A stretch of 64,000 nt of DNA from Klebsormidium nitens (Eukaryota > Plantae > Klebsormidiophyceae). Position numbers and translations under genes: made by a program. This document shows, piece by piece, positions 32,701 through 50,800 of the stretch (position 1 is the first letter of the stretch; every line of letters begins with the position of its first letter). The notes below the pieces were generated by a model, which worked only from the letters and a program-made list of their open reading frames with translations, was not told the DNA's origin and made no database searches. The stretch lies in the NCBI GenBank assembly GCA_000708835.1, contig DF237015.1:124001-188000 (forward strand), given 5' to 3'.

Positions 32701-34680
32701 GGATCTTCAACGGAACGAGTGGCATCCCTAGTGCAAGCTTTCCCAACAGTTTCGGCACCGCACTCCAGCAGGAGATAGCTGGGGCTCGTGCAGTGTTTGC
32801 AGAATTCGATGAAGGAGAAGGCAGCAACGGAACCGCGGCGGAACGGCGGAGCCAAGCAGCGGAGAAGTGAGCAGGGGTCACTGCTTCCGCCCAATGCCAC
32901 GGGGGTCAAACAGAAAGATCCCCCGCTAGAGGTGAGTAGAGGTTGACGTCGAGCCGGGGGGCGACAAAAGAGGCGGAAGGCCTAGGCGGCAAGGATTTTG
33001 ATGATGAAGGCATGAGGAACAGTTTGGGGCGGACGTTTTCGACGTGGAAAGCNNNNNNNNNNNNNNNNNNNNNNNNNNNNNNNNNNNNNNNNNNNNNNNN
33101 NNNNNNNNNNNNNNNNNNNNNNNNNNNNNNNNNNNNNNNNNNNNNNNNNNNNNNNNNNNNNNNNNNNNNNNNNNNNNNNNNNNNNNNNNNNNNNNNNNNN
33201 NNNNNNNNNNNNNNNNNNNNNNNNNNNNNNNNNNNNNNNNNNNNNNNNNNNNNNNNNNNNNNNNNNNNNNNNNNNNNNNNNNNNNNNNNNNNNNNNNNNN
33301 NNNNNNNNNNNNNNNNNNNNNNNNNNNNNNNNNNNNNNNNNNNNNNNNNNNNNNNNNNNNNNNNNNNNNNNNNNNNNNNNNNNNNNNNNNNNNNNNNNNN
33401 NNNNNNNNNNNNNNNNNNNNNNNNNNNNNNNNNNNNNNNNNNNNNNNNNNNNNNNNNNNNNNNNNNNNNNNNNNNNNNNNNNNNNNNNNNNNNNNNNNNN
33501 NNNNNNNNNNNNNNNNNNNNNNNNNNNNNNNNNNNNNNNNNNNNNNNNNNNNNNNNNNNNNNNNNNNNNNNNNNNNNNNNNNNNNNNNNNNNNNNNNNNN
33601 NNNNNNNNNNNNNNNNNNNNNNNNNNNNNNNNNNNNNNNNNNNNNNNNNNNNNNNNNNNNNNNNNNNNNNNNNNNNNNATGTCGGTTTCGTCGAACGGTG
33701 AGGCATTCGACGTGAAGACGCCTTCGAGATGTTTTCATGTGATGTCCTTTCGATTGCTCGGCCCCTCTCCAAACAAGGCTCTTCGTACCGGCTTCAAACA
33801 ACGTCAGTAGAACTGTGTCACCGGCCTTCTGCTGGAGCATCAGCAAAGCGCTCGCACTTATAATTTTAAGAGCAGTGCCCAGTTACTTAGGTCAGCACGA
33901 CGTGAAAGAACTGAATCGCAACAGGCAGAGTAGAAACTCAAAGCTTCGTTCAAGGTCGAACATTAGGTAACGGCTGCTTCTTGGTAGCTTAGTGCCCAAC
34001 ATTCGGGATTCCGTACAAGCTCCTGTCAGCACAGTCTGCCACCCGCGGTGCGTGGGGCCGCGGCCGCGCGCGCACCTCTAGGTGCCGCACGCGGACCACC
34101 ATTTGAGCGAGCACTCCATGCATTTGGACTGACGAAGCATTTCGGAGCATAGGAAACAAACCCTAGACCAGGATCGGCGAGTCGCACGCACACCTTCGCA
34201 ATTCGCACACTTGACGGAATCCTGACGTCTGCAGTATGAGACCCTCTGCAACTTTGCGCCCGAGACGCCTCCCGTCCTCGCGGCACTGGTGTGCTGAACC
34301 CTGACCCAGCGCTGCGGCGGTCAGAACAACCTTTGCAGGAACTTGACAAAGCCCCTTGATTGGAGCGGTTGGGCAAAGTGACGGAGCGCTTCGTTCCCTC
34401 ACAATCAACGTGGAAGAAGAGCTGGATATGTTGACCTGTCATTCTCGTGTATAGGCTGATCTATGAATGTAGCTTACTTTTCGGTTTCACTCAATCAGCA
34501 CAAACACCAAACTTTCTCCTTCATTTGTCCACCCATGTGATGGCGGTAAGAGAATCTGCTACAGCATTACAAGAATAGATCTTCTAGGGCTCTGCTATTT
34601 TCCAATTCCTTAAGTTTCTCAGTACCAGAGGCTCTTAAGGGCACCGGCCGTAACCCACTCAACAGACATCAAAGAAGTCA

Positions 34681-37600
34681 ATGGAGAGTCCACCAGAACG
34701 AGAGGAGGGAGACGCGATTACGCAGGACGATGCATGGAGTGTGGCCAGCGCCTACGTTGCAGAGAACGGCTTGGCTCGGCACCAGCTGGATTCCTTCGAG
34801 GAATTCGTCCAGTCAGCAATGCAAGAGATCGTTGACGAAGCGCCTGAGATCGAAATCCAAGAGGGGCCGCAGGAAGGTGGTCAGCAGGCAAGCCACTTGA
34901 AGGGTTCGTTGACTGGATTTTTGACCCAGGTCAGAATGGGAGAAGAATGACTTGATCAACGGATCAAGGAGAAAAAGGAGAGCAGATATCCAAAAAGAAG
35001 GAAACGGAGCTGAGATAGGGCAGAAAATAAGCGGTGGCTGTCGTGATCTTTCAGATCAGATTGAAAAACCTGGAGCTAGCTTTCCAAGTTTCCTTGAAGA
35101 CCCGTCGAAACTATTATCCAGATCTCACACGCTATCCAGCTGGAGGATCCATTTAGGCTTGGTGTCAAATCATCTTCGCTATCTTGAAGTTGAGCTAAGG
35201 CAGAACCTCGAATTGTGTTAGGCGTACCTCTGACACCTAAAAGCACATAAGTCCGAAACTCCAAAGCCCCATTCGTTGATTATACCCCCCTGCAGGTCAG
35301 CCACATAATCAAATTTGGGCAGGTCTACCTGAGCAAGCCCTCCACGAAGGAGGCCGATGGCGAAACCCTAGGCCTCTCCCCGAAGGAAGCCCGGCTACGC
35401 AACCGGACCTACGCGGGCGCGCTGTACGCGGACGCAAAGCGGACGTCCGTACGAGTGGGCTCCTCCAGAGAGGAGCCGGTGGACACGGAGATTTACGAGA
35501 AGGTTTTCCTTGGAAAGGTGCGCTGTTCATGGAATCATGCTTGATTTATCTTCGAGGTCGTCAGCTTGGCTTTTTACCAGAGATGGGCTTCTTTGCGAGG
35601 AGGGTCGAATCGCCGAGGCGCCCCATATGACGCGGGAACGGGCAGATCTTGCTTCATTACGAGCCGAGGTAGCCGTTTGGGCAGCCTGTGTTTATGTGTT
35701 CAAGAATCTCTGGAATCTTTCAGACCGGTTCAGCTAGTTCTGACTTCGATCTGCAAAGGTCGGCGCGGGCGGATCTGGACTGCCGGTATCATCTTTGATT
35801 CGATACCGTATTCTTCAGGACCATTAAACTACGTCTGCCATTGCATCTTCAACCGGTCCGAATCATGCTTAGATTGACACTAGTTCGAATAAATCCAAAC
35901 GCAAAGCCGCCTGTTCCTGCCATTCTCCAGCTGCCCATCATGGTGCGCTCCAGCTTCTGCGCGCTCTCCGGATTGTCCGACGCGCAGCGCGCGCGCGCCG
36001 GCGACTGTCCCTACGATCCGGGGGGCTACTACATCATCAACGGCGCAGAAAAGGTGCTCATTGCACAAGAGCGAATGAGCAACGGCCACGTGTACGTTTA
36101 CAAGAAGTCTCCGTATGCATACGTGGCAGAGGTGCGGTCGCAGGCGGACGGTGCGTACCGGGAAGCCAGCAGTCTGTATGTGCGGATGCTTTCGGGAAGC
36201 GCGAAAGGGGCGACTGGGAAGCCGATACGATGCAAGCTTCCCTCCATAAAGTAAGACGTCCTTTCTTTGGTGGAAACAAATCGAGAAAGATATTACTTGA
36301 CATCTTGTTCAAGGTTTTCTTCATACCTTCATGACGATCTTGACCTCCGACGAATCCTCTTCCTTGTTCGACAACCCGTGTCTCGAAAAGCCGCGGTTGG
36401 AATGCCTTCATAATATCTGTTCACGCCCGTGATTCAAGCTGACCAAAAAACTTGGACACACACTTTCAACGAAGTTTGCACTTTCGGAAAGAGCACCTTG
36501 TTCAATTCTGTCCTTCGACGGCTTCCTGGTATGAAAACCTTGGCTTACGCACAGTCCCTGATGCAGGGGTGACGTCCCCATTGTTCCGTTGTTCTTCGCT
36601 CTGGGCGTCACAGCGGAAGAGCACATCTTGGAGCGGATCTGCTACAATCTGGAGGACCGCGAGATGCTGGAGCTCCTGCGGCCGTCGCTGGAGGAGGCAG
36701 CTGACGTGTCCAGCCAAGAGGTATGTGCACGAAACCCTTTTAGACTTTGAAGTTTTTCGCGTTTGGGATCCCGTTCTGCGACTTTCTATAAACGGGGCTT
36801 TCAAAGCGATTGCACGAAAAAAATCAGATGCGGCCCTGGCAATCTGGGTTGCCGCGTCACCAGTTTCTTGATGGGCGGCGTCAATGGATTCTGTTAATCG
36901 CTCACATGTTTGTATCCACTTGCGTGGTTTAGAAATCACTTTCTCTCCTCTGATGACAGGAGCTATCGGCTACAGCCTATAGTCCTGCATCAGGTCTTTT
37001 GGGATTTGTCTTCGCCGCTCGTTCCATCGACGTCAACCCCAGGTATCTCGAACTCTCCTGAGAGATTTCTCGTGCTGACGTTTGCATCTCTCTTTCTTCA
37101 TAAAACCTCCTCCCGATGTCGTGTAACCCTCCGCGCAGGCCGCGCTCGATTACATCGGCGGCAAAGCCGCTTCTCACCTCAACGGAGACACGCCGCGCGC
37201 GCGCGCGCGCGAGCTTCTGCAGACGCACCTTCTGCCGCACGTGGGCACCGAGGACACTCAATCGTGCGCGACTAACAAGGCGTACTTCCTGGGTTACGTC
37301 ATCCACCGTCTGCTGACGTGTGCGCTGGGCCGGCGGGCAGAGGACGACAGGGAGCACTACGGGAGCAAACGGCTGTACCTGGCGGCGCCGCTGATGGGGG
37401 GGCTCTTCTGCGCGGTAAAACATCCCCCTGTTTCAGAAAAATTGCTGTTCTCTTAAGTCCGGGCTTGCTGGAAATATGGATCCGTGATGAGTTGGCCATC
37501 ACACTCTTCGTCATAAGTTGTCGTGGTTTTTGGGGTCATTTTGAAACCAATTGATGCGACGGTGCTTATTGATCTTGACTTTGCATATCTACGAATTGAA

Positions 37601-40600
37601 GTGCGTTTCAAATTCGCTGCACAGGCCGCTCAGTAGCCAAATCTTGCCCTCATTCGCCCTAGCCTGGTTTTTGCAAGATCCGACAGCCTCACTCTCAACG
37701 TCCAGGTATTGCAAGAGCAGAAGTCAGGTTGCATTGCTACCGCGCAATCATACACTTTCCTCTGTCGAATGATGGAAATCATATGACCAGTCTTCTTTGA
37801 TCATTCCGGCCGCAGCTGTTCCGCCACATGACCAACGGCGCGCGGAAGTACCTTCAGAAGCTGGTGGAAAAAGGCCAGAAGATGGACCTGACGTCAGCCG
37901 TGAACGCCAAAATCATTACACACGGGTTCAACTATTCTTTGGCGACCGGAATGTGGGGAGAGCGAGGGACCGTGGGGATGATACCAGGGGTGTCTCAGGT
38001 GCACTTCTCCTTCCTCGTATTCTACTCTCTCGTGGTCATGTTGTTACGCTGAAAGTGAACTTCGGATCAGGAATGCTTTCCGCTTGAGCCCTTTTCGAAT
38101 TTCAGCGCACCTTCCAATCACGACACTTCGTTCAGTCCCGGCTCAAACATCGCCTTTCAATCCCACGATAGTTATGTTTCCAATCTGTCCTTCCTCTCAA
38201 GCACCACCAACTGCATTCTGGATAGCCGTTAACTCCGGTTTAGCCTCACCATCGGATGAAGTCATCAACTACCCATTTGATGACGTCAGGACCTCGAACG
38301 CGACACATACGCCTGGACGATATCCCTGCTCCGCCACATCGCTTCCCCCCTCTCGGAGAAGGGCAAACTGTCCAAACCGCGCCAGCTCCACAACTCCCAC
38401 TGGGGCAGGATCTGCCCGGTGGAAACCCCCGAGGGCGCGTCTTGTGGGCTGACGAAGAGCCTGGCGCTGAGCGCGTATGTGTCGGTTGGGTCTCCCCCCG
38501 GCCCGCTGCTGGAGTTTCTAGACGAGTGGATAACCGAGAGGCCGGAGGTGGGTTTTTGATGAATTATATTGCATCTTGAGAAAAAGAGCTCATGTGCCAG
38601 TTGAAATACGAGAAATGTGAACATTTTCTTGAGATGGAAGAGGGTCAAATTTTTATCCAGCTTCAACCTTAGACGAGTGGACAACTAAGAGACTTGAGGT
38701 GGGTTGAAGACGAGTTTTTGAACAAGCGAAGTGTGGTGAAACGAAGTTTGTGCCCAGTATTCGAGATACACGGAGANNNNNNNNNNNNNNNNNNNNNNNN
38801 NNNNNNNNNNNNNNNNNNNNNNNNNNNNNNNNNNNNNNNNNNNNNNNNNNNNNNNNNNNNNNNNNNNNNNNNNNNNNNNNNNNNNNNNNNNNNNNNNNNN
38901 NNNNNNNNNNNNNNNNNNNNNNNNNNNNNNNNNNNNNNNNNNNNNNNNNNNNNNNNNNNNNNNNNNNNNNNNNNNNNNNNNNNNNNNNNNNNNNNNNNNN
39001 NNNNNNNNNNNNNNNNNNNNNNNNNNNNNNNNNNNNNNNNNNNNNNNNNNNNNNNNNNNNNNNNNNNNNNNNNNNNNNNNNNNNNNNNNNNNNNNNNNNN
39101 NNNNNNNNNNNNNNNNNNNNNNNNNNNNNNNNNNNNNNNNNNNNNNNCTTAAGATTAGCCTTGAGATGTAAGAGGGACATCATTTAAACAAGGTGCAATA
39201 TCCTGGACCTGTGTTTTTCTGCGGAAGAGGTGTGTTTTGGCGTGAGGATATCGCTGCGCCCTTGTCAAAAGGGTGTAATAATGCCTTCTGTAAGTAACGA
39301 ACAGACTTTTGAAAGGTGAAACGAGACAGGGGGTGGAGCTTGGCGGCAGTCCCCGTTTTCTCTTTGATTTCGCTTTACAGCGGATTGCTTTTAGTCTATT
39401 CTGTCGACTTTCTGAACTGTTCTAGGCTTTCTACCGAGACGACCACAAACATATTTCCAGTTGAAGCATCCCCAGTAGGAGAAGCATTTCCCGACTGTTT
39501 TGCTGGCCCTTGTCACCGCTTTTTGGAAGTTATCCCCAAGTGTTATCGCAGAGAGCCGGAAGCACATTCCGATTCACACCACCCTTTTTCCTCTTCAGAA
39601 CATTTCACCGAGCGCTCTCGCCGAATCGACCAAGATTTTTGTCAACGGCGCCTGGGTGGGCGTCCACCGGGACCCACAGCTTTTGGTGTCAACGCTGCGC
39701 CAGCTGCGGCGCCAGGTGGGCGGTAACACCGAGTTGGGCATCGTTCCGGACGTCCGCAACGGAGAGCTCAGGCTGCACACGGACGCCGGAAGGCTCTGCC
39801 GGCCGCTGTTCGTGGTGGAAAACGGGAAGCCGGTGATGAAGAAACGGGCGCGGCGAGAGGAGACCAACAACGAGGTAGGTTTAAGGAGCTAAAGGGTTAA
39901 GTTTAGCTTTTGCCGAGGTTTTTGAAAGAAGACAAGAAAATTTTGTGTCTGGCTTTTTATTAATCTGAAGTAAGACTTGGAAGCTATTTATGATACTGGG
40001 AATAGCGAAGCACAAAAGATTGATCTCAGGACTCACGGGTTCTGGATTGAAACCATCCCCAAATCAGATATTTCGTGTTTCTGAGAGGGTCAGGTACAAG
40101 ATCAACTATACGTTTCTCGACATGAAAGCACATCAAAAGAGCATGGTATATTACCGCCAGCAAAACCCTGCAATTGTGAACTATTCGTATCGTTCTTATC
40201 AGCACCTTCTTGAAAACGTTGGATTCGCCTTACCTAATCACGATCCCTCTTACCTAAACACCTTCCATCAACCCGGGACGTCTTTCGACAACCCTCGTCG
40301 GCCGTTCTACATCCCATCCCAGTACTTTCTCGTTTTCGTAGAGCAGGCCGCCCGAGGCTTCCAGGAAAGACCACAACCCTCAAATCGAAAAATCCTCTAA
40401 GATACTTATACTAAGCTCAAGTTATAACACGAACGAAGCTAACACTAAAGTCCTGAATCCAAAAGTTTACATATTCCGCACCCGTGCCCACCCTATACAT
40501 CCCCCTTGCCAACCCACCCGTCCCAGCGTTACAACCTGAGCTTACAACAATTATTCTATAGAGCGAATCAGATTGACTGCTCGAAAAGAACTCAAACCCC

Positions 40601-43600
40601 TTTTCCAACCCTCCAAACCTTGCAGGACGGCGGCCCGGTCTGCTGGCGCGCGCTGCTCGCCGCGGGCGGCATCGAATATCTGGACGCGGCGGAGGAAGAG
40701 ACGGCCATGGTCGCCATGACCCTCGCCGACCTCGCGCGCGCTCGCGCGCGCCCGCGCGACGCTCTCGCCGACGTCAGCTATGCCCACTGCGAGATCCACC
40801 CGTCGCTCATCTTCGGCGCCTGCGGTTCCGCCGTTCCGTTCCCGGACCACAACCAGCCGGTCCGGAACACGATGCAGGCCAAGATGGCGACGCAATCCTG
40901 CGGGATCCCCCTCACTAACTACCAGCTGAGGCTGGACACGACGACGCACGTGCTGTGCGACCCGCAGAAGCCGCTGGTGACGACACGTGGCGCGGGGTGT
41001 TCGCACTTTCGGGAGCTGCGCGCGGGCCAAAACGCGATCGTGGCGATTATGTGCTACTCGGGGTATAACCAGGAGGACACTGTGATTATGAATCAGGCGT
41101 TCATCGACCGGGGGCTCTTCCGGTCGCTTTACTACAGGACGATCAGGTATGGCTTGCCCGGTAAAACGGCTCGAGAAGCGCTCGTGTTTCTGCACTGCTG
41201 TTTTCTGGGGCCCGAGGCTACTCTTTAGGTTTCAGTGACGGAGGGTATAGCGTTCTATTTTTGAAGGCTCTTGAATAGTTCAGGACCCTCGTGAGGTTGT
41301 AAAACAAGGATTGTTCTGGACCAGACGAACTTCGATTTTGAAGTTCAATTATATCCAGCCAGTCCAGTTCAGGTCTCTGATTTTGCGTGGCTGTGAAGGG
41401 GAATGAGGAGTAGCAGGTTCGAGAGGCAGATGCGCCGCAGCCGTGATTCAGGTATCTCTTCTCTGAATTAATAAGATGGAGAGAGCACTTACGTCGTATC
41501 ATTTAAAGTTGTCAAAGGGGACACTTACTTGACGTTAAGCCCTTCACGCACATCATTTAAAACTCAAGAGAGATAATAGTAAGCCAAGATAATAATAAGC
41601 TCCGACTAACCCTAAAATCCTAACCCAAAAAGACACCCGCTCCGCACCCCTACCCACCCTAACCACCATACTAACTCTACCCGTCCCAGTGTGGTTACCT
41701 CACTATTATCTCGGCTTACTACTAATCTTCTTGAATTTGATACATCATCCTACAAACGACGGAGCGTCGAGGTTCATTTGTGACGTGTACCTCGTGCAGG
41801 GACGAAGAGAAGACGGTGGACGGGAAGAGAGGTCTGAAAGAGAGGATCGAGCGTCCGGACCCAACGAAGACAGCCAAAATGTATCTCGGCAGCTTCGACA
41901 AGCTGGACTCCGACGGATTGGTGGAGCCGGTAAGTGTTCGAATTCTTAATTCTTAATTCTTACTCCTCTCTTGACCGGTCAATCCCTTTGAGCACTTGTT
42001 CTGTCGTCCAACACTCCGGTCCGGCTTTCGGACTGTCCAAGTTTTGGTTTCCGCCTGAGTCGTTAGGTCTCCTGTCACGTGTTAGAAGTATTTGCGCNNN
42101 NNNNNNNNNNNNNNNNNNNNNNNNNNNNNNNNNNNNNNNNNNNNNNNNNNNNNNNNNNNNNNNNNNNNNNNNNNNNNNNNNNNNNNNNNNNNNNNNNNNN
42201 NNNNNNNNNNNNNNNNNNNNNNNNNNNNNNNNNNNNNNNNNNNNNNNNNNNNNNNNNNNNNNNNNNNNNNNNNNNNNNNNNNNNNNNNNNNNNNNNNNNN
42301 NNNNNNNNNNNNNNNNNNNNNNNNNNNNNNNNNNNNNNNNNNNNNNNNNNNNNNNNNNNNNNNNNNNNNNNNNNNNNNNNNNNNNNNNNNNNNNNNNNNN
42401 NNNNNNNNNNNNNNNNNNNNNNNNNNNNNNNNNNNNNNNNNNNNNNNNNNNNNNNNNNNNNNNNNNNNNNNNNNNNNNNNNNNNNNNNNNNNNNNNNNNN
42501 NNNNNNNNNNNNNNNNNNNNNNNNNNNNNNNNNNNNNNNNNNNNNNNNNNNNNNNNNNNNNNNNNNNNNNNNNNNNNNNNNNNNNNNNNNNNNNNNNNNN
42601 NNNNNNNNNNNNNNNNNNNNNNNNNNNNNNNNGTCCATCCTTCAAAGGGTTCTGACGCTTATCATCAACCTCTTGAACCGATTAAGAAGAGAAGTTAAGA
42701 CAACATCACCCCAAGCCGCCCATGATCGGCTTCATAAACAAAACCCTACACCTTAAGTATAAATTGAAGAACGCGTGTTCAGGGCACCCGCATCTCGAGC
42801 GGGGACGCGCCTGACGTGGTAATCGGGAAGACTGCCCCGGTGGCACCGGTTGATGAACCACCGGGCGAAGCAAGTCGGGTCAACTGCAGCACCCTCCAGA
42901 AGCAAGACGGCATCATCGATCAGGTAGGCATGAACCGGGCGAGGATCTAAGGGAACTTCCCCCTTTCATTTATCATTTTGCAGCCCCGGTCTTGACTTAG
43001 GGTTCTCTACACATAATCTCCGCCTTTGTCGATTCCAAAGCGCCAATTTTTTTAAATGCACAGATTTTTTGGCAAAGGTCTAACTCTCAAAAAAGACACG
43101 GGACCTTTCCTACGAAAACCGGAGGATATCGATTTGTTCGTAGAAGTTGAGATGTGGCTCCTCGGCAATCCTGTCTATTTGACGCCCAGGTACTCCTGAC
43201 GGAGAACGAGAGCGGGCAGAAATTGGTGAAGGTCCGCGCGCGCTCGGTGCGGGTCCCGCAGATCGGGGACAAGTTCAGCAGCCGGCACGGGCAGAAGGGC
43301 GTCGTGGGCATGACGTTACCACAGGTGGGCGGTGGCAAAGCCAGTCTCTTTTTAAGGCCGGGAGAGATTGGAATAGATTCTGCTGGGGCCAAGTAAAGAA
43401 GATCTGTGCCATCAAGATTCAGGTTCTGTATGGAAAGGAGCTCCAGCTCTTCGGAGAAAGGGACAAGAAGCTTCCGAACTGACAAACAATAAAGTCCAGT
43501 CCTGTAATCCGTACAAGACGCCTCGTAACCATCGATATCTGCCTAATGATGACATGTCGTTATGTTTGTAAGCTTGTTCGGCTGTCCCTTGTAGACGATT

Positions 43601-46341
43601 CCTCCGTAACGAACTATTGTGGAGAGCCCCTAATCCAAAGCTAAGCCGCGGCTGAAAGATTCTGATTCTTCGGATGACGTTCCCCCACCTCACATGTCAA
43701 TCATCATCTCCCATGCAGGAGGACATGCCATTCACCCGGGATGGCGTCACGCCTGATATCATCGTGAACCCGCATGCTATCCCCGGCCGCATGACGATCG
43801 GCCACCTCATCGAGTGCGCGGCCGGCAAGGCCGCCGCCTGCAAGGGGAAGGAGTGGGACGCCACGCCCTTTGCTGACGTCACGGTGAGTACACGTCGCTC
43901 ACGTCATGGTGGATCCCCCTTTGTAGACTTTCTGCTTTCCTCGCACAGGAAGAAGCTCTTTCCCTTCACAGTGTAAGCTGGTAAAGTATGGTAGTTTACT
44001 GAACGGACTGCATCCGGTGACATTCTTGGGTGCAGAGTGGGACTGCGCAGAGAATGATGGTCAGATCTTAATATGGAAAACTGTAAAAGCCTTATGTAGC
44101 CGTTCTGACTAAGATTTCATCATTCTTAAAGCTATGTAGCTGTAGGGACGCCATTGTCATTCAGAGTATCGACGCCTCACTCAGCGGGTTAAGCACTTGA
44201 GACAAGACAATTCCGAGTGAAGCTTATCAGGTAAAAGAGACTTCGACCAACATCACTTTACACATCCACGAGGTGATTGACTGGACGTTTCCAAAGCTCC
44301 CCCTCTGCACATCGTCTACGATTGGCTCCCCCACTCTTCCTCAGGTCGAAAGTTTCCCGGTCAAGAAAATGGACGAGACCGAGCTGAAGCAGCTCGGAGT
44401 CGGCGGCCGGTGCGAGATCTGCCGAAGGAAGCTAGCGGTTGGGGACGCGTGTCAGCAGATGGCACCCTGCGGCCACGTGTTCCACTCTGATTGCCTGGCG
44501 CCGCGCCTAGAGGAGGGAAACGCGTGCCCAAGTTGCCTCAACGTGGTGAGAATCGTTTCCCTGCCAAAGGTTCCAATTCAAAGCTGTCAAACACCCGGGT
44601 AGAACGGGCTTAGCTCCCATAAGGGTTAGGCTTCGTACCGGCTTTTTCCGGCCATCACTTTGAGTAGCGCCGGTCGCTCCTTCGACCGAGGTACCGTCGG
44701 ACAGCTTAAGGCGGCCTGTGTGATATCGCGACTATCCTTCTGAGATTCATAGATTAAAGCATCGGCAAAACCTGGCATACAGACAAACGTTTGCCCAGAG
44801 ATTACTCTTTGAGTCCTGTACCTGATTGCTACTGTAAGGCTCTGGCGGCAATTTTAAGCCGTTTCCATAGGCTGACGAGGGCGAAATTTCGTGTTGGTGT
44901 CAAAAAACAAAGGTGATTTATCAGAGTCATGCCACTGATCAAATAGTGCACATGAGAGTCTGCCATCAGAGCACCAGACTTCAGGCGTCCTCTAATAGAA
45001 AAGGAGACTTAGCCGTCACTCATTGGAGATCTGAAAGCCCCTTAGAATCCAAATTAGTAAGCGAAGGAATTGCGAACCCTGAACAACCAGAACTTGGGAA
45101 AATCTTGAATCTACAGGTGGACCAGGTTTCTACGGCGCTCCAAGCGTGCGGTTATCAGAACAGGGGAAATGAGGCAATGTACAACGGGAAAACGGGGCGC
45201 AAACTAGAGGCGAGGGATCTTTGTGGGGCCAATCTTTTACCAGCGGCTCAAGCACATGGTGGAGGACAAGATTTGCGGCAGAGCAAGGGGCCCGATGCAG
45301 GCAAGGGCTCTGATTCTCTGTGTTTCTTCATCTCGTATTTACTTTCCGCGAGCTTTGAAGAGGTGTCGCGTCAGTTTCGGTGCGGACCACCCTTGGAGAC
45401 CAAACTTACGCAGAAGTACGAGCCGGTGCTGCCCGGCGATTCATTTCTCGTCGTAAGATGCTACAAAAAGCCACGCCCTGTGTATCGCGATCAAGGATCT
45501 AGATTGACAAGTGAGCATCTTGTAGAGTAGCGGAACCAGTTTCGACAACGAGTTGAAATGGCGGAAGGATGTTTTCGATGAGCGGAATTAAGATTCATCG
45601 GGGGTCCCGCCATGCCTTCTGAGGATCATTTAAGCAACCTGCCAACCAGTCTGGTTGAAAGCTGCCGAATGATCATTGCCCGAAGTACTTGATTAAGAGA
45701 TCTAATCGCACGAACTGACGACCACTCTACTACCCAACGAAAGCCCCAAAAACCCACTCCTTGGGAGACAGCTAAAAGCTGACGTTCTCACCGCAGCCGC
45801 TGACGCGGCAGCCCGTGAAGGGCCGCGGCAAGGCGGGCGGGCTGCGCTTTGGGGAGATGGAGCGCGATCGCGCGATTGCGCACGGCGCCGCGCGTTTCCT
45901 GAAGGAGCGCATGATGGACCAGAGCGACGCCTGCCGCGCGCACCTCTGCGCGCGGTGCGGCCTGCTCGCGAGCGCGCGCGGGTGCCCGGGGTGTGCGACG
46001 TCGGCGGTGGTACAGGTGGGGCTCGCTACAGCTGAAACGTTCTTTGTCAGTACGGCCGCCTTGCGGTGTGTCTCAGGGCCCGAACTTACTAGATCGGAAG
46101 CCATGCCTTCCGCCTTGTATCATGACCCTTCTTCGGGGCTTCGTTATTGTGCAAGGAGGTTTTGTTGTGTACAAAGTTCGCTTCTGCAATGACGTTCACT
46201 CTCATCTTTGTGGGTCCTTTCCAGAAGTCATGGTTGACCAATGCGCTTCCTTTCCTGCTCCAGGTGGAAATACCGTATGCCTGCAAGCTTCTGTTCCAAG
46301 AGCTTATGGCGATGGGCATAGCTCCTCGGATGTACGCCTAA
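34681..46341 (+). CDS. Divergent RNA polymerase II second-largest-subunit (RPB2)-like gene. About 16 exons, an apparent +1 frameshift at ~45215, and a possible inserted RING exon.
   Basis: Collinear RPB2 motifs: [154 protein letters not shown] (not the MHGQKG of NRPD2) places it on the RPB2 side. No symbol is given because orthology is unresolved. Confidence 0.92.
44345..44545 (+). CDS. RING-H2 (C3H2C3) zinc-finger exon within an intron position of the RPB2-like gene
   Basis: CEIC-x15-CGH-x2-H-x2-C-x10-CPSC gives all 8 ligands. Acceptor ccccactcttcctcAG lies before 44345 and donor GTG|GTGAGA after 44545. The exon is 201 nt (67 codons), phase 0 at both ends. Confidence 0.8.
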
Positions 46342-47821
46342 AAGCGCCAAGATCGACGAGCGTGTGCGAGCCGTTCTTCCAAACCGACACGCAATTCTGC
46401 TTTAAACTTGGCGACCAGGCTGCCCTTCGGGAAAGCAGTGAATCAGGACGTATTGGAATGACCCAATAAGAAACTTTAACGGCAAATGTAATGATCGAGA
46501 GTTTATATCGGCTACGAACGTGGGCGAGGGATTGGATAGTTGTTGCATGATTCCTTGTGCCATGCAAGTCGTCCTTTCTGATGCGTGAAGTGATTTCGTT
46601 CTTTACGTGCGACTGTAGTACGGGAAAGCGTAAGTAAAGGCAGGTCGGAGACCAGCTGAAGTGATCACGACTTTTCTATGTGATGGGGAGCAGGACATAG
46701 AGCATCCTACGAAAGCAAGATGCTTCAACCGCACACTTGTAAGTGCACTTCGTCAAAGACGGGAACGATAAAGAGTACTCGTAGATCGTCCACCAAGTCT
46801 CCATCTATCTACAGAAGGCTGACTTCAACAGAATTCAGGAAATTCAGAAGGGCTCTGTAAAATCGATGCAATCAACTTGACAGCAGCGTCGGCTCACTTT
46901 GACGCCGCACGCATGATTCAGCATTCGAAATGAGAACAGGAAAGCTTGGTGGATGTACATATCCGTCTGTGCGCAACGTTTCGGTAGATCCATCCTGATT
47001 GATTGTTGCCATCAAGACGTTGGCACGGACTATCAAACGGCACCATATATATTGCCAAAACTCACGCTGGGCCGCCCTGATTGCTGGCAATCTCAAACAA
47101 GATACCTATTAGGACGACATTATTGAATCGATCTTTCACTGAGCGGCTTTGAGACACATTAACAAAGTCTGAATGTGATTTCCGATGGAGACATACGTGT
47201 AGCAGCAGCGCGCAGCAATGCAAGCGGACTACGGATATGTGAGGTTCAAGTTGAAGCGCGATCGTGCTTTATCGCAAGCGCGGGCATAATTGGTGGAGCC
47301 CATCAGATGAAGACCAGCTGCCAGCCCGAGCGATGTCCACTGGACGCACATATGCCCACGGTTGCATGTTCGGGCGCCCCGCTCGTGTGTGCGGCGTGCG
47401 CATGTACGGGAAGCTAAGCNNNNNNNNNNNNNNNNNNNNTTGCATAAACACGTAGGTATTCGGACGGTCCGCACTGGTGTCGCGCCAAAAATCTTCGAAA
47501 TTCTGAGTCCAGCTTGTGAACCAGCCTCAAAATCAGAGTCCTGAAAGCGTACGTTCATGGCTACCTTGGGCTACCTATGGTATTTTCCAATTCGCTTGTA
47601 GCGGTAGAGGAGGCGCTGAAGCTTGGAAGCGGGGCGCTGTTGAGCACTGAAGGATAGGGAGCCATACTGCTAAAGATCACCTGGTTGCTTCGGAGGTACA
47701 GGACTCAAAACTGCGATTCGGCGACAGGAAAAACGTTAGTTGGATCAAACAGTCGTGGCGTGGCATTTGTTGTAGCTTCATCCTCTAGGAAGTGAGAGGT
47801 AGGATTTCTCTGTCCGGTGCA

Positions 47822-50800
47822 ATGGAGGACGAGGACGTGCCCATGGAAGAGGCTGGAGAACCATCTACGCCTGTTCGTTCTGGGAAAAGACCGCGACCGT
47901 AAGTTGTTGCTTGAGGCGTGAAAGGCTTCCCCCTTGGAAGCAATCCGCAATTTACCCTGCTCTGGCCACTGAGCAGTTGAAAGACTGATTTTTTTTTCAC
48001 GTGCTCCGAAACAGGACGTTTCTCTGCCGGAAACCCTTGCTTGTCACCTCGAGTATACAAGAGTGTGCAGAGGGCTTTGAAAGAGGCAGGATCCCTGTCA
48101 AAGTCGCATCATAGGTGCGCTCCATATGGCGCATACGGCATCATGCAAGCACCTGTGATTGGCAAAGTAATCTATAGAGTTATTCTGGCACTCGAAAGCT
48201 TGTAACCCTTGTACTGCCGCTGCAGGGACGACGAGGAGGACTTTCGGGTTGGTTCCATTATGCGCTTTGACCTCAAGGACTTCATGACGTACAAGGACAT
48301 GTCATTCTGCCCCGGCCCCCGCCTGAACCTCTTGGTCGGCCCCAATGGAACGGGCAAGAGCTCCATCGTCTGCGCCATTGCGCTGGGGACTGCCGGCTCT
48401 CCCAATGTGAGCAAACTGCGGTCACTCTACTCGAGCATCTTGCTGCCCTATGACTGACTAAGAGAAAGAGCATTGGATCTTGTTTTGAAGACCAGCTGGT
48501 TAAGACCAACACGCATACAAGATGGTTGAACATGAGGTACAGCTTCAAGCAAGGGTCACTGAACAGGCGTGCATGGTATTCAGCGACTACCAGCTTAACA
48601 TTGTAAAGGGAGTCACATTGTTAATGAGAAGGATACTACAAGACAAAACATGTGCAGATCACTCACGTCATGTCTTGCTCATCATTTGGTTGTGTGGTTG
48701 CCTCCAGCTTCTCGGACGGGCCGGACAGGTCGGGGACTATGTCCGGAGGGGCGCAGAATGGGGCAGTGTAAAGCTGACCTTACGGGGGAAAGAGGAAGGG
48801 TCTGCGATCTCTGTGTACCGCAAGATATACAAGAACAACAACTCCCAATGGCAACTCAATGGTGAGGCCCATGCGATGAGGCTCCACTCTTGGACAGGAT
48901 ATGACCACTTTTACAAGGAGATTTGGCTTGAGAACGCGCTCCATGTGATCTGGCCAGCAGGACTATGCCCTCAATAGCGCGGAAGTCAGACTTGTTTCAG
49001 GCTTGCCTGTCTACATTGTCTCAGGCTTGACACACCAAATGATGTTTGCAGGGAAGAACTGCCGACAGGAGGATGTTAAGCGTGTGGTTAAGGAGCTCAA
49101 CCTGCAAGTTGGGAATCTCTGCCAGGTACGCGTGCTCGTCCTCGTTGACCTCTGCCACTGCTCCTGAAAGTAAACACTCAAGTCCATCCATGGTGTTTAT
49201 TTATTGTGCCTATCTTCTCGTAAAAGCACAGGCAGTACTGCCAATGCCGATGACCCAGTGCTTCCCTGTTGTACGGATATCAGAATCAAGGAGCTCAATG
49301 CTTATACGAAAGCAGCAGGCCAGTCCTCATGTTGCTCCTCTCATGTCACTTTGCGTGCAGTTTCTACCCCAAGACAAGGTGTCCGAGTTTGCAAAGATGG
49401 ACCCCATCCGGTTACTGGAAGAGACGGAGAAGGCAGCGGACAACGGCCTTTATGAGCTGCATCAAGACTTGGACAAGGCCTCCAAGGACGTCAAGGGCCT
49501 TGACACGGTAAGTTCCCCGCTTCTAGTTATCCCCAGGCCTTCTACATGTCAGCCTTTCCTCTTACTTTTCAAGTCTAATCTACTACTTCGAAGTAACACG
49601 CAAGCCTTCCACATGTCACCCTTTTGATCCTGCAGGCTGCCGCTGGAAACCAGCAATCTTCTATGAAGTAGCGGCAATCGACGTGCGTTTTGATTTCAAC
49701 CAATCTGATAAGCCTATTGGCCCTTCTGCAGACGGTTGAGCAGCACCAGCGGCAGCTCGAGCGTTTGCGTGGAGAGCAGAAGTCGCTGCAGCCGGATGTG
49801 GAGCGCATGCAGGAGCGGGAGAAGAAGCTGGAGGAGGTGAGCAAGACAGCAACGCAAACATTGGCCCGTCTCCACACTTTTACTGTGCTATAGCTTTGTC
49901 ATGGGTAAAGATCCCTGGAGGAGATGAGCATACCTGCAATGCAAGATAGGCATGTCCCAACTCTTTCTCGTAATGTGATAGTTTGTCACAGGTACTGGTC
50001 TAATGCCTCATAAGTACTTTCGAGGACATTCTGGCACAATCTTGTCTGTGACACGCCGACTTAGTCTTCAGTTTATTGTCATGGAACAATTGTGTATGAG
50101 GAGCACTGCTCTTCATTTGTATGAGTTCGACGGGCACATCTCGTTTGAGGCGCATGCTTTGTGAAGGTTCCAGCACAAACGTCTGGCCATATTTTAAAGC
50201 TGGCATCGATCGCTTCTCTCTATATCAGACTTCATGGATTGCTTGTGCAACTCTCTCGCTGCAAGGCGGAAGTCATACAACGCTGTTGCTCACACTTGAC
50301 TGCTTTTCACAAAATCACAAGGAAGTAGAGCAGGCAGTGCTCAAAGCCACCTTCATAGAAACCTTGTAGAAACTTCGAAGTTCCAAAAGCTTGTCCGCTC
50401 GCACGAGCAGGCGAACCTGATGAGCATGAAGCGGCCGTGGTTGGAGTTTGACAAGGCCAAGGTGGACATGGCGCAAGCAAAGCAAGCGTTTCAGGAGAGC
50501 AAGGCTACGAAGCAGGAAAAGGAGGCTGAGATTAAGCACCTGAAGGCGCCGCTCGAGTAAGGGTCTCTTTACTCGTTCGAATCGTTTGATTCGATTCAAC
50601 TTCCTGTAAAAATTGATTATTCGACTTTGGGTCGTCATCTTTCTGAAGCGGTTTGTGCAGAAGCTGGTCCATTTCTTTTCGCACCAATCTTTGTCATTCA
50701 GGAAAGTAAGAATACCAGCATTTGCCTCGTTGCTGCAGTCATTAAGGACGCTCCCCTGTCTCTTTAAATGGTTCTCCTCCTTGAGAACTACCAGATGCGC

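Follow-up and report, generated by a model that had tools for sequence, protein, structure and literature searches.

RNA polymerase II (Pol II) is linked with ubiquitination, as it would be by a RING domain of its own, by E3 ubiquitin ligases that act in trans (Rsp5/NEDD4, Elongin-Cullin, CRL4-CSA, WWP2). These ligases are separate proteins recruited to stalled Pol II, and none of them belongs to a polymerase subunit. Surface loops in the second-largest subunit of bacterial RNA polymerase tolerate whole folded modules (insertions beta-i4, beta-i9 and beta-i11 of E. coli); beta-i11 lies just before the ATPVF motif, which we take to be close to the insertion site treated here. The bacterial insertions differ from the present case in that they are not zinc fingers or RINGs, are constitutive within one open reading frame (ORF) and are conserved across clades. 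The DNA analyzed here (64,000 nt of contig DF237015.1 of Klebsormidium nitens, positions 124,001 to 188,000; in the following, the window) contains a paralogue of the gene for the Pol II second subunit, RPB2, and one intron of this paralogue holds a 201-nt segment coding for a RING-H2 domain.

In charophytes, extra NRPD/E2-like second subunits have been described with a conserved metal B site, a degenerate hybrid-binding motif and weak transcript support, and low or condition-specific expression was reported for extra polymerase subunits of these algae (PMC11194755). Earlier surveys recorded no such extra subunit in Klebsormidium or streptophyte algae (PMC4476159; PMC7994812). The paralogue in the window resembles the charophyte genes as an RPB2-derived extra copy with GYNQED kept and the hybrid-binding motif degenerate, poorly expressed or annotated, and with a canonical NRPB2 gene alongside (locus L004, found together with the orthologous contig L002). 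Judged by these features, it is probably an NRPD/E2-like extra second subunit of the charophyte type. Its best PDB matches were Rpb2 (1e-57), archaeal Rpo2 (1e-38), RPC2 (7e-29) and Arabidopsis NRPD2 (3e-23). By score the gene is thus of Pol II type and far closer to Rpb2 than to the land-plant NRPD2/E2 of Pol IV/V, a comparison made by score and not by phylogeny; no RING is reported in any NRPD2/E2. As an unrecognised, conserved and fast-evolving RPB2 paralogue, the gene is of interest in itself. It may be an overlooked Klebsormidium member of the NRPD/E2-like second subunits and is probably an algal forerunner of the Pol IV/V second subunit, which could bear on how plant silencing polymerases gained partners.

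The reading preferred here, with a probability of about 0.45, is that a RING-H2 exon of RNF126/BTL type was shuffled into an ancestral intron of this conserved, fast-evolving paralogue and that it would, by its sequence, be a competent in-frame cassette exon. The features concerned are the following.

34681..46338, plus strand: host gene, a Pol II-type RPB2 paralogue with 16 exons (RPB2 profile, best PDB matches, orthologue L002).
43719..43883, plus strand: host exon 13, EDMPFTRDG...DATPFADVT, 165 nt (Pfam Rpb2_6, E 9e-23).
43884..45116, plus strand: host intron 13, phase 0, GTGAGT...CAG, 1233 nt (gene model; canonical RPB2 loci).
44325..44344, plus strand: acceptor region of the RING exon with the pyrimidine tract ...CCCCCACTCTTCCTCAG (pyrimidine fraction 0.89, position weight matrix (PWM) score 5.8).
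44345..44545, plus strand: candidate cassette exon of 67 codons, comprising a pre-RING stretch (VESFPV...) and a complete C3H2C3 RING-H2 of RNF126/BCA2 (plant BTL) type (Pfam, PDB match, composition).
44546..44551, plus strand: donor-like GTGAGA after the RING exon (PWM score 3.0).
45117..45300, plus strand: host exon 14, VDQVSTAL...GRARGPMQ, with a +1 frameshift at about 45213-45216 and followed by a GC-AG intron (RPB2 profile, DNA contig).

The 67 codons were matched by the Pfam model zf-RING_2 with an E-value of 7.4e-11 and 42.6 bits (cut-off 27.3), and four further RING models also scored above their cut-offs. All eight zinc ligands are present at canonical spacing (C-x2-C-x15-C-x-H-x2-H-x2-C-x10-C-x2-C), and the segment fits the RING-H2 regular expression that was also applied to RPB2 homologues. 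By domain match and ligand pattern, the segment is genuine RING-H2 coding sequence and not a chance ORF. The closest solved structure was the RING of RNF126 (2ect, E 1.5e-10). With RNF126/RNF115 (BCA2, Rabring7) and the plant BTL proteins the segment shares the C3H2C3 ligands, the core ...PCxHxFHxxC..., a terminal CPxC and, ahead of the RING, a short hydrophobic stretch. It differs from RNF126 by one extra residue in the first loop, by Arg instead of Trp after the sixth ligand, by Leu after the last Cys and by its location inside a polymerase gene. Only the RING exon of an RNF126/BCA2-like gene is found in the window; an N-terminal BCA2 zinc finger is missing, as is any other exon-like island in intron 13. 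Neither a second copy of the segment nor a further RING or related match was detected within the 64 kb, and a word-based protein search for relatives or the donor of the RING ORF yielded no candidate of 73-232 aa. An Atlas search with the RING returned generic RING clusters only. A candidate from a metagenome scan (L001) was discarded as an unrelated transmembrane RING protein, 43% identical. The single-sequence AlphaFold model of the RING (predicted local distance difference test score 44.5) was uninformative and was not used.

Coding signal and splice signals coincide at the borders of the segment. Its GC content is 0.627, compared to 0.631 in the host exons and 0.473 in the introns, and GC at codon positions 1/2/3 is 0.66/0.45/0.78 in the segment and 0.63/0.46/0.80 in the host exons (third-position GC, GC3, 0.776 and 0.796, respectively). 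No other GC island of at least 0.58 occurs in the 15 host introns. Stop codons are absent from the frame over 48 codons before the segment and 18 codons after it, with non-coding composition in both flanks (GC3 0.58 and 0.44, respectively; first-position GC 0.44 upstream), and the coding signal therefore begins at the AG and ends at the GT. The segment is directly preceded by ...CTCTTCCTCAG. The score of this acceptor (5.8) is matched by only 3% of the intronic AGs in the host gene, and its pyrimidine fraction over positions -20 to -3 (0.89) compares with 0.44 for the acceptor at 45117 (...TCTACAG). The splice matrices were derived from only 20 introns, with some coordinates of neighbouring introns off by 1-3 nt, so that the scores are noisy and serve for ranking only. 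Intron 13 is the longest of the 15 host introns; the RING exon would split its 1233 nt into 461 and 571 nt, close to the gene median near 410 nt. All boundaries between exons 13 and 14 are in phase 0 (frames checked with the RPB2 profile) and the segment is 201 nt long; inclusion would therefore preserve the frame and add exactly 67 codons.

Two canonical RPB2 loci (L004 and L005) carry a phase-0 intron at the same codon (...DVT|GTGAGT), of 395 and 631 nt and without a RING (0/2). Intron 13 is, from this shared position, ancestral. Taken together, AG/GT boundaries, frame and composition are those of a cassette exon and, at the level of sequence, what exon shuffling into a phase-0 intron already in place would leave behind. 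The likeness to classical exon shuffling lies in a single-domain exon of 201 nt and phase 0-0 in a phase-0 intron older than the insertion; the difference is that use of the exon in mRNA is hypothetical here and that no donor gene was found.

The host gene was modelled with a profile hidden Markov model (HMM) of 1169 positions built from 46 full-length RPB2 proteins. Its 16 exons match the HMM contiguously and in order from position 5 to 1142, with usable splice sites at every exon, and the full Rpb2 domain set is present in order (Pfam matches to Rpb2_5, Rpb2_6 and Rpb2_7). Two assembly gaps lie within the gene (38777-39147 and 42098-42632). Exon 13 corresponds to residues 997-1051 of yeast Rpb2 in the alignment to 1i3q_B. 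Exon 14a matches Rpb2_6 with E 2e-4 and 20.9 bits, slightly under the cut-off of 23.4, and the downstream RPB2 piece matches Rpb2_7 with E 2e-19. Retained catalytic motifs are GYNQED (the ED of metal B), the 12-residue motif of GDKFxSRHGQKG type (yeast K979/K987) and the Arg of PSRMT (R1020). The Ser beside this Arg (yeast S1019/R1020) is replaced by Gly in exon 13 (PGRMT, 43786-43800); unlike in the paralogue, it is kept in 120 of 120 retrieved RPB2 fragments. The near-invariant hybrid-binding motif QSPRNTYQSAMGKQAMG is degenerate in the host gene (17-residue changed version), and 11 of 123 near-invariant columns are altered, compared to a median of 2 in the references. No protein more than 65% identical to the best-conserved host exon was present among 1.8 billion representatives. 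A giant-virus origin of the gene was considered and rejected: it has 15 spliceosomal introns, at least one of them in common with canonical RPB2, and viral RPB2 homologues reached only 1e-15.

A protein fragment (P0230, 86% identical) led to an orthologous Logan contig of 7.2 kb (L002, 1-7227) from sample SRR23617307, the same sample that holds canonical NRPB2 gene L004; both genes thus coexist. L002 aligns with exons 3-12 of the window gene at 77-92% DNA identity, while the introns are unalignable. Over 753 codons without stops, synonymous divergence (dS) was 0.335 and the ratio of nonsynonymous to synonymous divergence (dN/dS) was 0.25. Conserved exons and this ratio indicate that the paralogue, shared with this second species, has been maintained by purifying selection and is not an old wreck. 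An 11-residue derived part of the hybrid-binding motif is common to the host gene and P0230. A relative-rate count between window and L002 (41 vs 35) revealed no overall asymmetry. In one structural detail the two copies differ: exon 9 of the orthologue is split by an intron of roughly 406 nt (L002 4803-5208) between ...RNT and MQAK..., and the window copy lacks an intron at the counterpart position (40871-40878).

The original prediction had described an RPB2-like exon ending in DATPFADVT in phase 0 with a donor at 43884, the next exon, VDQVSTAL, from 45117 in phase 0 and, between them, a complete C3H2C3 RING of 67 codons with an acceptor, a GTGAGA donor and the frame kept. These elements were confirmed in the sequence, as was the RPB2 identity of both flanking exons, with exon 14a under the cut-off as given above. 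It had also been right on the better pyrimidine tract of the RING acceptor, on the Arg in place of Trp (CLAPRL) and on the downstream frameshift, which was found to be real from the jump of the HMM match between frames and from a gap-free DNA contig (run X1). Its proposal of an exon-shuffled, possibly alternatively spliced RING held for the sequence (ancestral phase-0 intron, composition bounded by AG...GT); its transcript side was not supported, as no transcript was seen.

According to the preferred reading, a RING-H2 gene of RNF126/BCA2 type (BTL type in plants) would have donated one exon by shuffling to the pre-existing phase-0 intron of a Pol II second-subunit paralogue that evolves fast and is maintained by selection. 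Upon transcription, the spliceosome would be expected to include the RING exon in at least part of the mRNAs. With the exon included, a zinc module of 67 residues would sit in the hybrid-binding domain, flanked by the counterparts of T1051 and V1052 of yeast Rpb2. Engagement and activation of ubiquitin-conjugating enzymes (E2) by RINGs involve Ile or Val after the first Cys, Trp after ligand 6, Pro after the seventh Cys and a linchpin Arg or Lys after the eighth Cys. Ile (CEIC) and Pro (CPSC) are kept in the segment. Because Arg stands in the place of Trp and Leu in that of the linchpin, the module more likely serves structure or protein docking as a zinc finger than E2 activation as an efficient ligase. 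The segment is a credible candidate for a shuffled-in cassette exon, with inclusion and E3 function both hypothetical, and a fusion of polymerase subunit and RING is plausible by sequence. Were the exon used, a RING embedded in a polymerase core subunit would be an unprecedented architecture and a rare clean case of exon shuffling with a traceable ancestral intron. If it is not used, it would still be a well-defined captured domain exon waiting in an intron.

Several observations weigh against the shuffled and usable cassette exon. Every favourable sequence property listed above would also be shown by a recently captured, functionless exon. The donor of the segment (GTG|GTGAGA) scores 3.0, below all GT donors of the host gene (4-8), and 14% of the intronic GTs equal it; it is plausible, not strong. 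Two of the four positions for engaging and activating E2 are lost, namely the Trp after ligand 6 and the linchpin, where CPSCL has Leu and RNF126 has Arg. A regular-expression scan for the RING-H2 pattern in the 150 nearest RPB2 representatives gave no match (0/150), and a continuation into a RING was likewise missing from the exon-13 fragments (0/120); the matches of the exon-13 search were canonical RPB2 fragments only. A literature search and the searched homologues yielded no precedent for an RPB2-RING combination. The contig of the orthologue ends in exon 12, upstream of the RING intron; look-ups with its further ORFs led back to this contig, and nine ORFs of the window are absent from the protein collection. 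At conserved columns, the window copy has 24 unique changes and L002 has 11 (chi-square 4.8), a weak hint of relaxed constraint in the window lineage.

The frameshift in exon 14 adds to these points. The HMM match switches from frame 2 (end 45215, HMM position 1010) to frame 0 (start 45217, position 1011), owing to one surplus base in ...GAGGCGAGGGATC..., translated as ...LEAR and then IFVGP.... The extra base lies at 45213-45216 within ...GCGAGGGATC..., and exon 14 is otherwise intact. The +1 shift is supported by run X1, in which a DNA contig of 2665 nt covers 44200-45938 without a gap, and the canonical genes L004 and L005 are in frame at this site. A tiny intron bypassing the shift was rejected, since there is no room for it. 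The frameshift is located about 670 nt downstream of the RING segment and throws the Rpb2_7/clamp region and the rest of the final 160 or so residues out of frame. As it is real in the DNA, the assembled allele cannot encode a full-length fusion.

RNA data point in the same direction. The share of sampled words of the host stretch was 0.00 in 24 of 24 listed RNA runs of the same species label. Logan contigs of four runs (X8, X11, X13 and X15) aligned to 40600-46200 covered no RPB2-like exon and no RING, and depth was zero over 44200-47399 in X8 and X11. The gene that follows downstream (from 47446) served as the positive control and was covered in X8 and X11 by spliced contigs with 0 mismatches, five GT-AG junctions and a depth of 84-251. 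At 100% identity of this neighbour the strain matches, and the host gene is therefore either silent in these libraries or transcribed too rarely for assembly; Logan contigs can miss rare transcripts. RNA matches at 43261-43303 and 45836-45867 were dismissed as short cross-matches (90-95%) to other polymerase genes that share conserved motifs. Throughout the RNA data examined the gene is silent in the sequenced strain, and no full-length fusion can come from the allele as assembled. On the junctions that the original prediction had named for an RNA-seq check, the four runs, in which the host gene has no transcript, speak neither for inclusion nor for skipping of the RING. A co-occurrence of RPB2 and RING, for which the original prediction had suggested a search of algal genomes and transcriptomes, did not turn up among the 150 representatives, the 120 exon-13 fragments or the two canonical loci. 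The suggested coupling of a variant polymerase to ubiquitination is speculation, given two of four E2 positions lost and a silent, frameshifted allele.

The main rival of the shuffled cassette exon is an inert captured exon, that is, a fragment of a RING-H2 gene which carried one exon with its own splice sites and part of the adjoining intron, was recently inserted by repair or transposon-mediated capture, is skipped or spliced as noise and plays no role in the polymerase. This is a serious possibility, if a doubtful one. Insertion into an intron of roughly 400-650 nt, as in L004 and L005, would explain the 1233 nt equally well, and splice sites, open frame, ligands and high GC3 would all be inherited from the donor gene, with no selection needed if the insertion is young. 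The missing RNA, the missing RING in RPB2 homologues and the loss of the E2-contact Trp and the linchpin also agree with it. It is opposed by the flanks of the exon, where no transposon signature was found and repeats reach only the chance size of 11-13 nt (no claim of transposon capture is made), and by the lack of a second copy in the window and of a close relative among proteins of 73-232 aa. The combination of same strand, phase 0-0 and open frame would arise by chance in only about 1 in 6 to 1 in 18 random exon insertions, and in a host gene under purifying selection a disruptive spliced-in exon should be removed or disabled unless it is very young. Only slightly less probable than this rival is that the whole locus is dead, with the paralogue a recently inactivated pseudogene (frameshifted and silent) and the RING exon a relic. 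For such a state speak the Rpb2_7/clamp region out of frame, the absence of transcripts from every listed RNA run and the excess over L002 of unique changes at conserved columns. Against it, about 3.4 kb of coding sequence contain no disabling lesion other than the frameshift, every splice site is usable, GC3 is still 0.80, and dN/dS of 0.25 against the orthologue shows that selection acted during most of the divergence; for charophyte extra subunits, expression that is low or tied to certain conditions is reported (PMC11194755), and rare transcripts are dropped from Logan contigs.

Two further readings accept a working exon and go beyond the preferred one. That the host is a Pol IV/V-like extra subunit of a streptophyte alga with a shuffled-in RING-H2, conserved in the lineage, spliced when the gene is on and serving as an E3 in cis or as a zinc module to which silencing factors dock, appears improbable. 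If a built-in, spliced and lineage-conserved RING were true, a core subunit of a multisubunit RNA polymerase would be seen for the first time with a RING of its own. A catalytically competent cis E3 module of a variant polymerase, for example for polymerase turnover or chromatin targets, is less probable again and makes up a small subset only. The eight ligands at RING-H2 spacing, the Ile and Pro positions and the RNF126-type pre-RING stretch would suit a ligase; Arg for Trp, Leu for the linchpin and the extra first-loop residue relative to RNF126 would not, and expression was not seen, the frameshift is real, and precedent is lacking in the searched homologues and in the literature search. 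Least probable by far is an independent small nested gene, with an ATG at 44369 and a 77-codon frame through RING and GTGAGA to a stop at 44600-44602. The ORF 44369-44602 does exist, in a frame free of stops from 44201 to 44599. Coding-like composition, however, starts at the acceptor (44345) and not at the ATG and ends at the donor and not at the stop, the RNF126-type pre-RING residues lie upstream of the ATG, RNA coverage is zero, and the ORF is absent from the protein collection.

Further observations were made on the host gene and its surroundings. Two of the host introns are of GC-AG type (34888-35295 and 45301-45796) with a typical CAG|GCAAG donor; the donor after exon 14 reads CAG|GCAAGG. 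Intron 9 contains a C/A-rich stretch with telomere-like CCCTAA(A) units (41563-41738). Numerous contigs of all four RNA runs match it at 90-95%, which suggests a dispersed low-complexity repeat and not transcription from the host locus. No Rfam families were found across 34000-47500. The neighbour gene (47446-49837, plus strand) starts about 1.1 kb past the end of the silent RPB2 paralogue and encodes an SMC-type ATPase head (Pfam AAA_23 and SMC_N). DNA run X5 (44200-50199) differs from the window only by G>A on short contigs and looks like a bisulfite-converted library; it could give the methylation state of the silent paralogue in comparison to its active neighbour.

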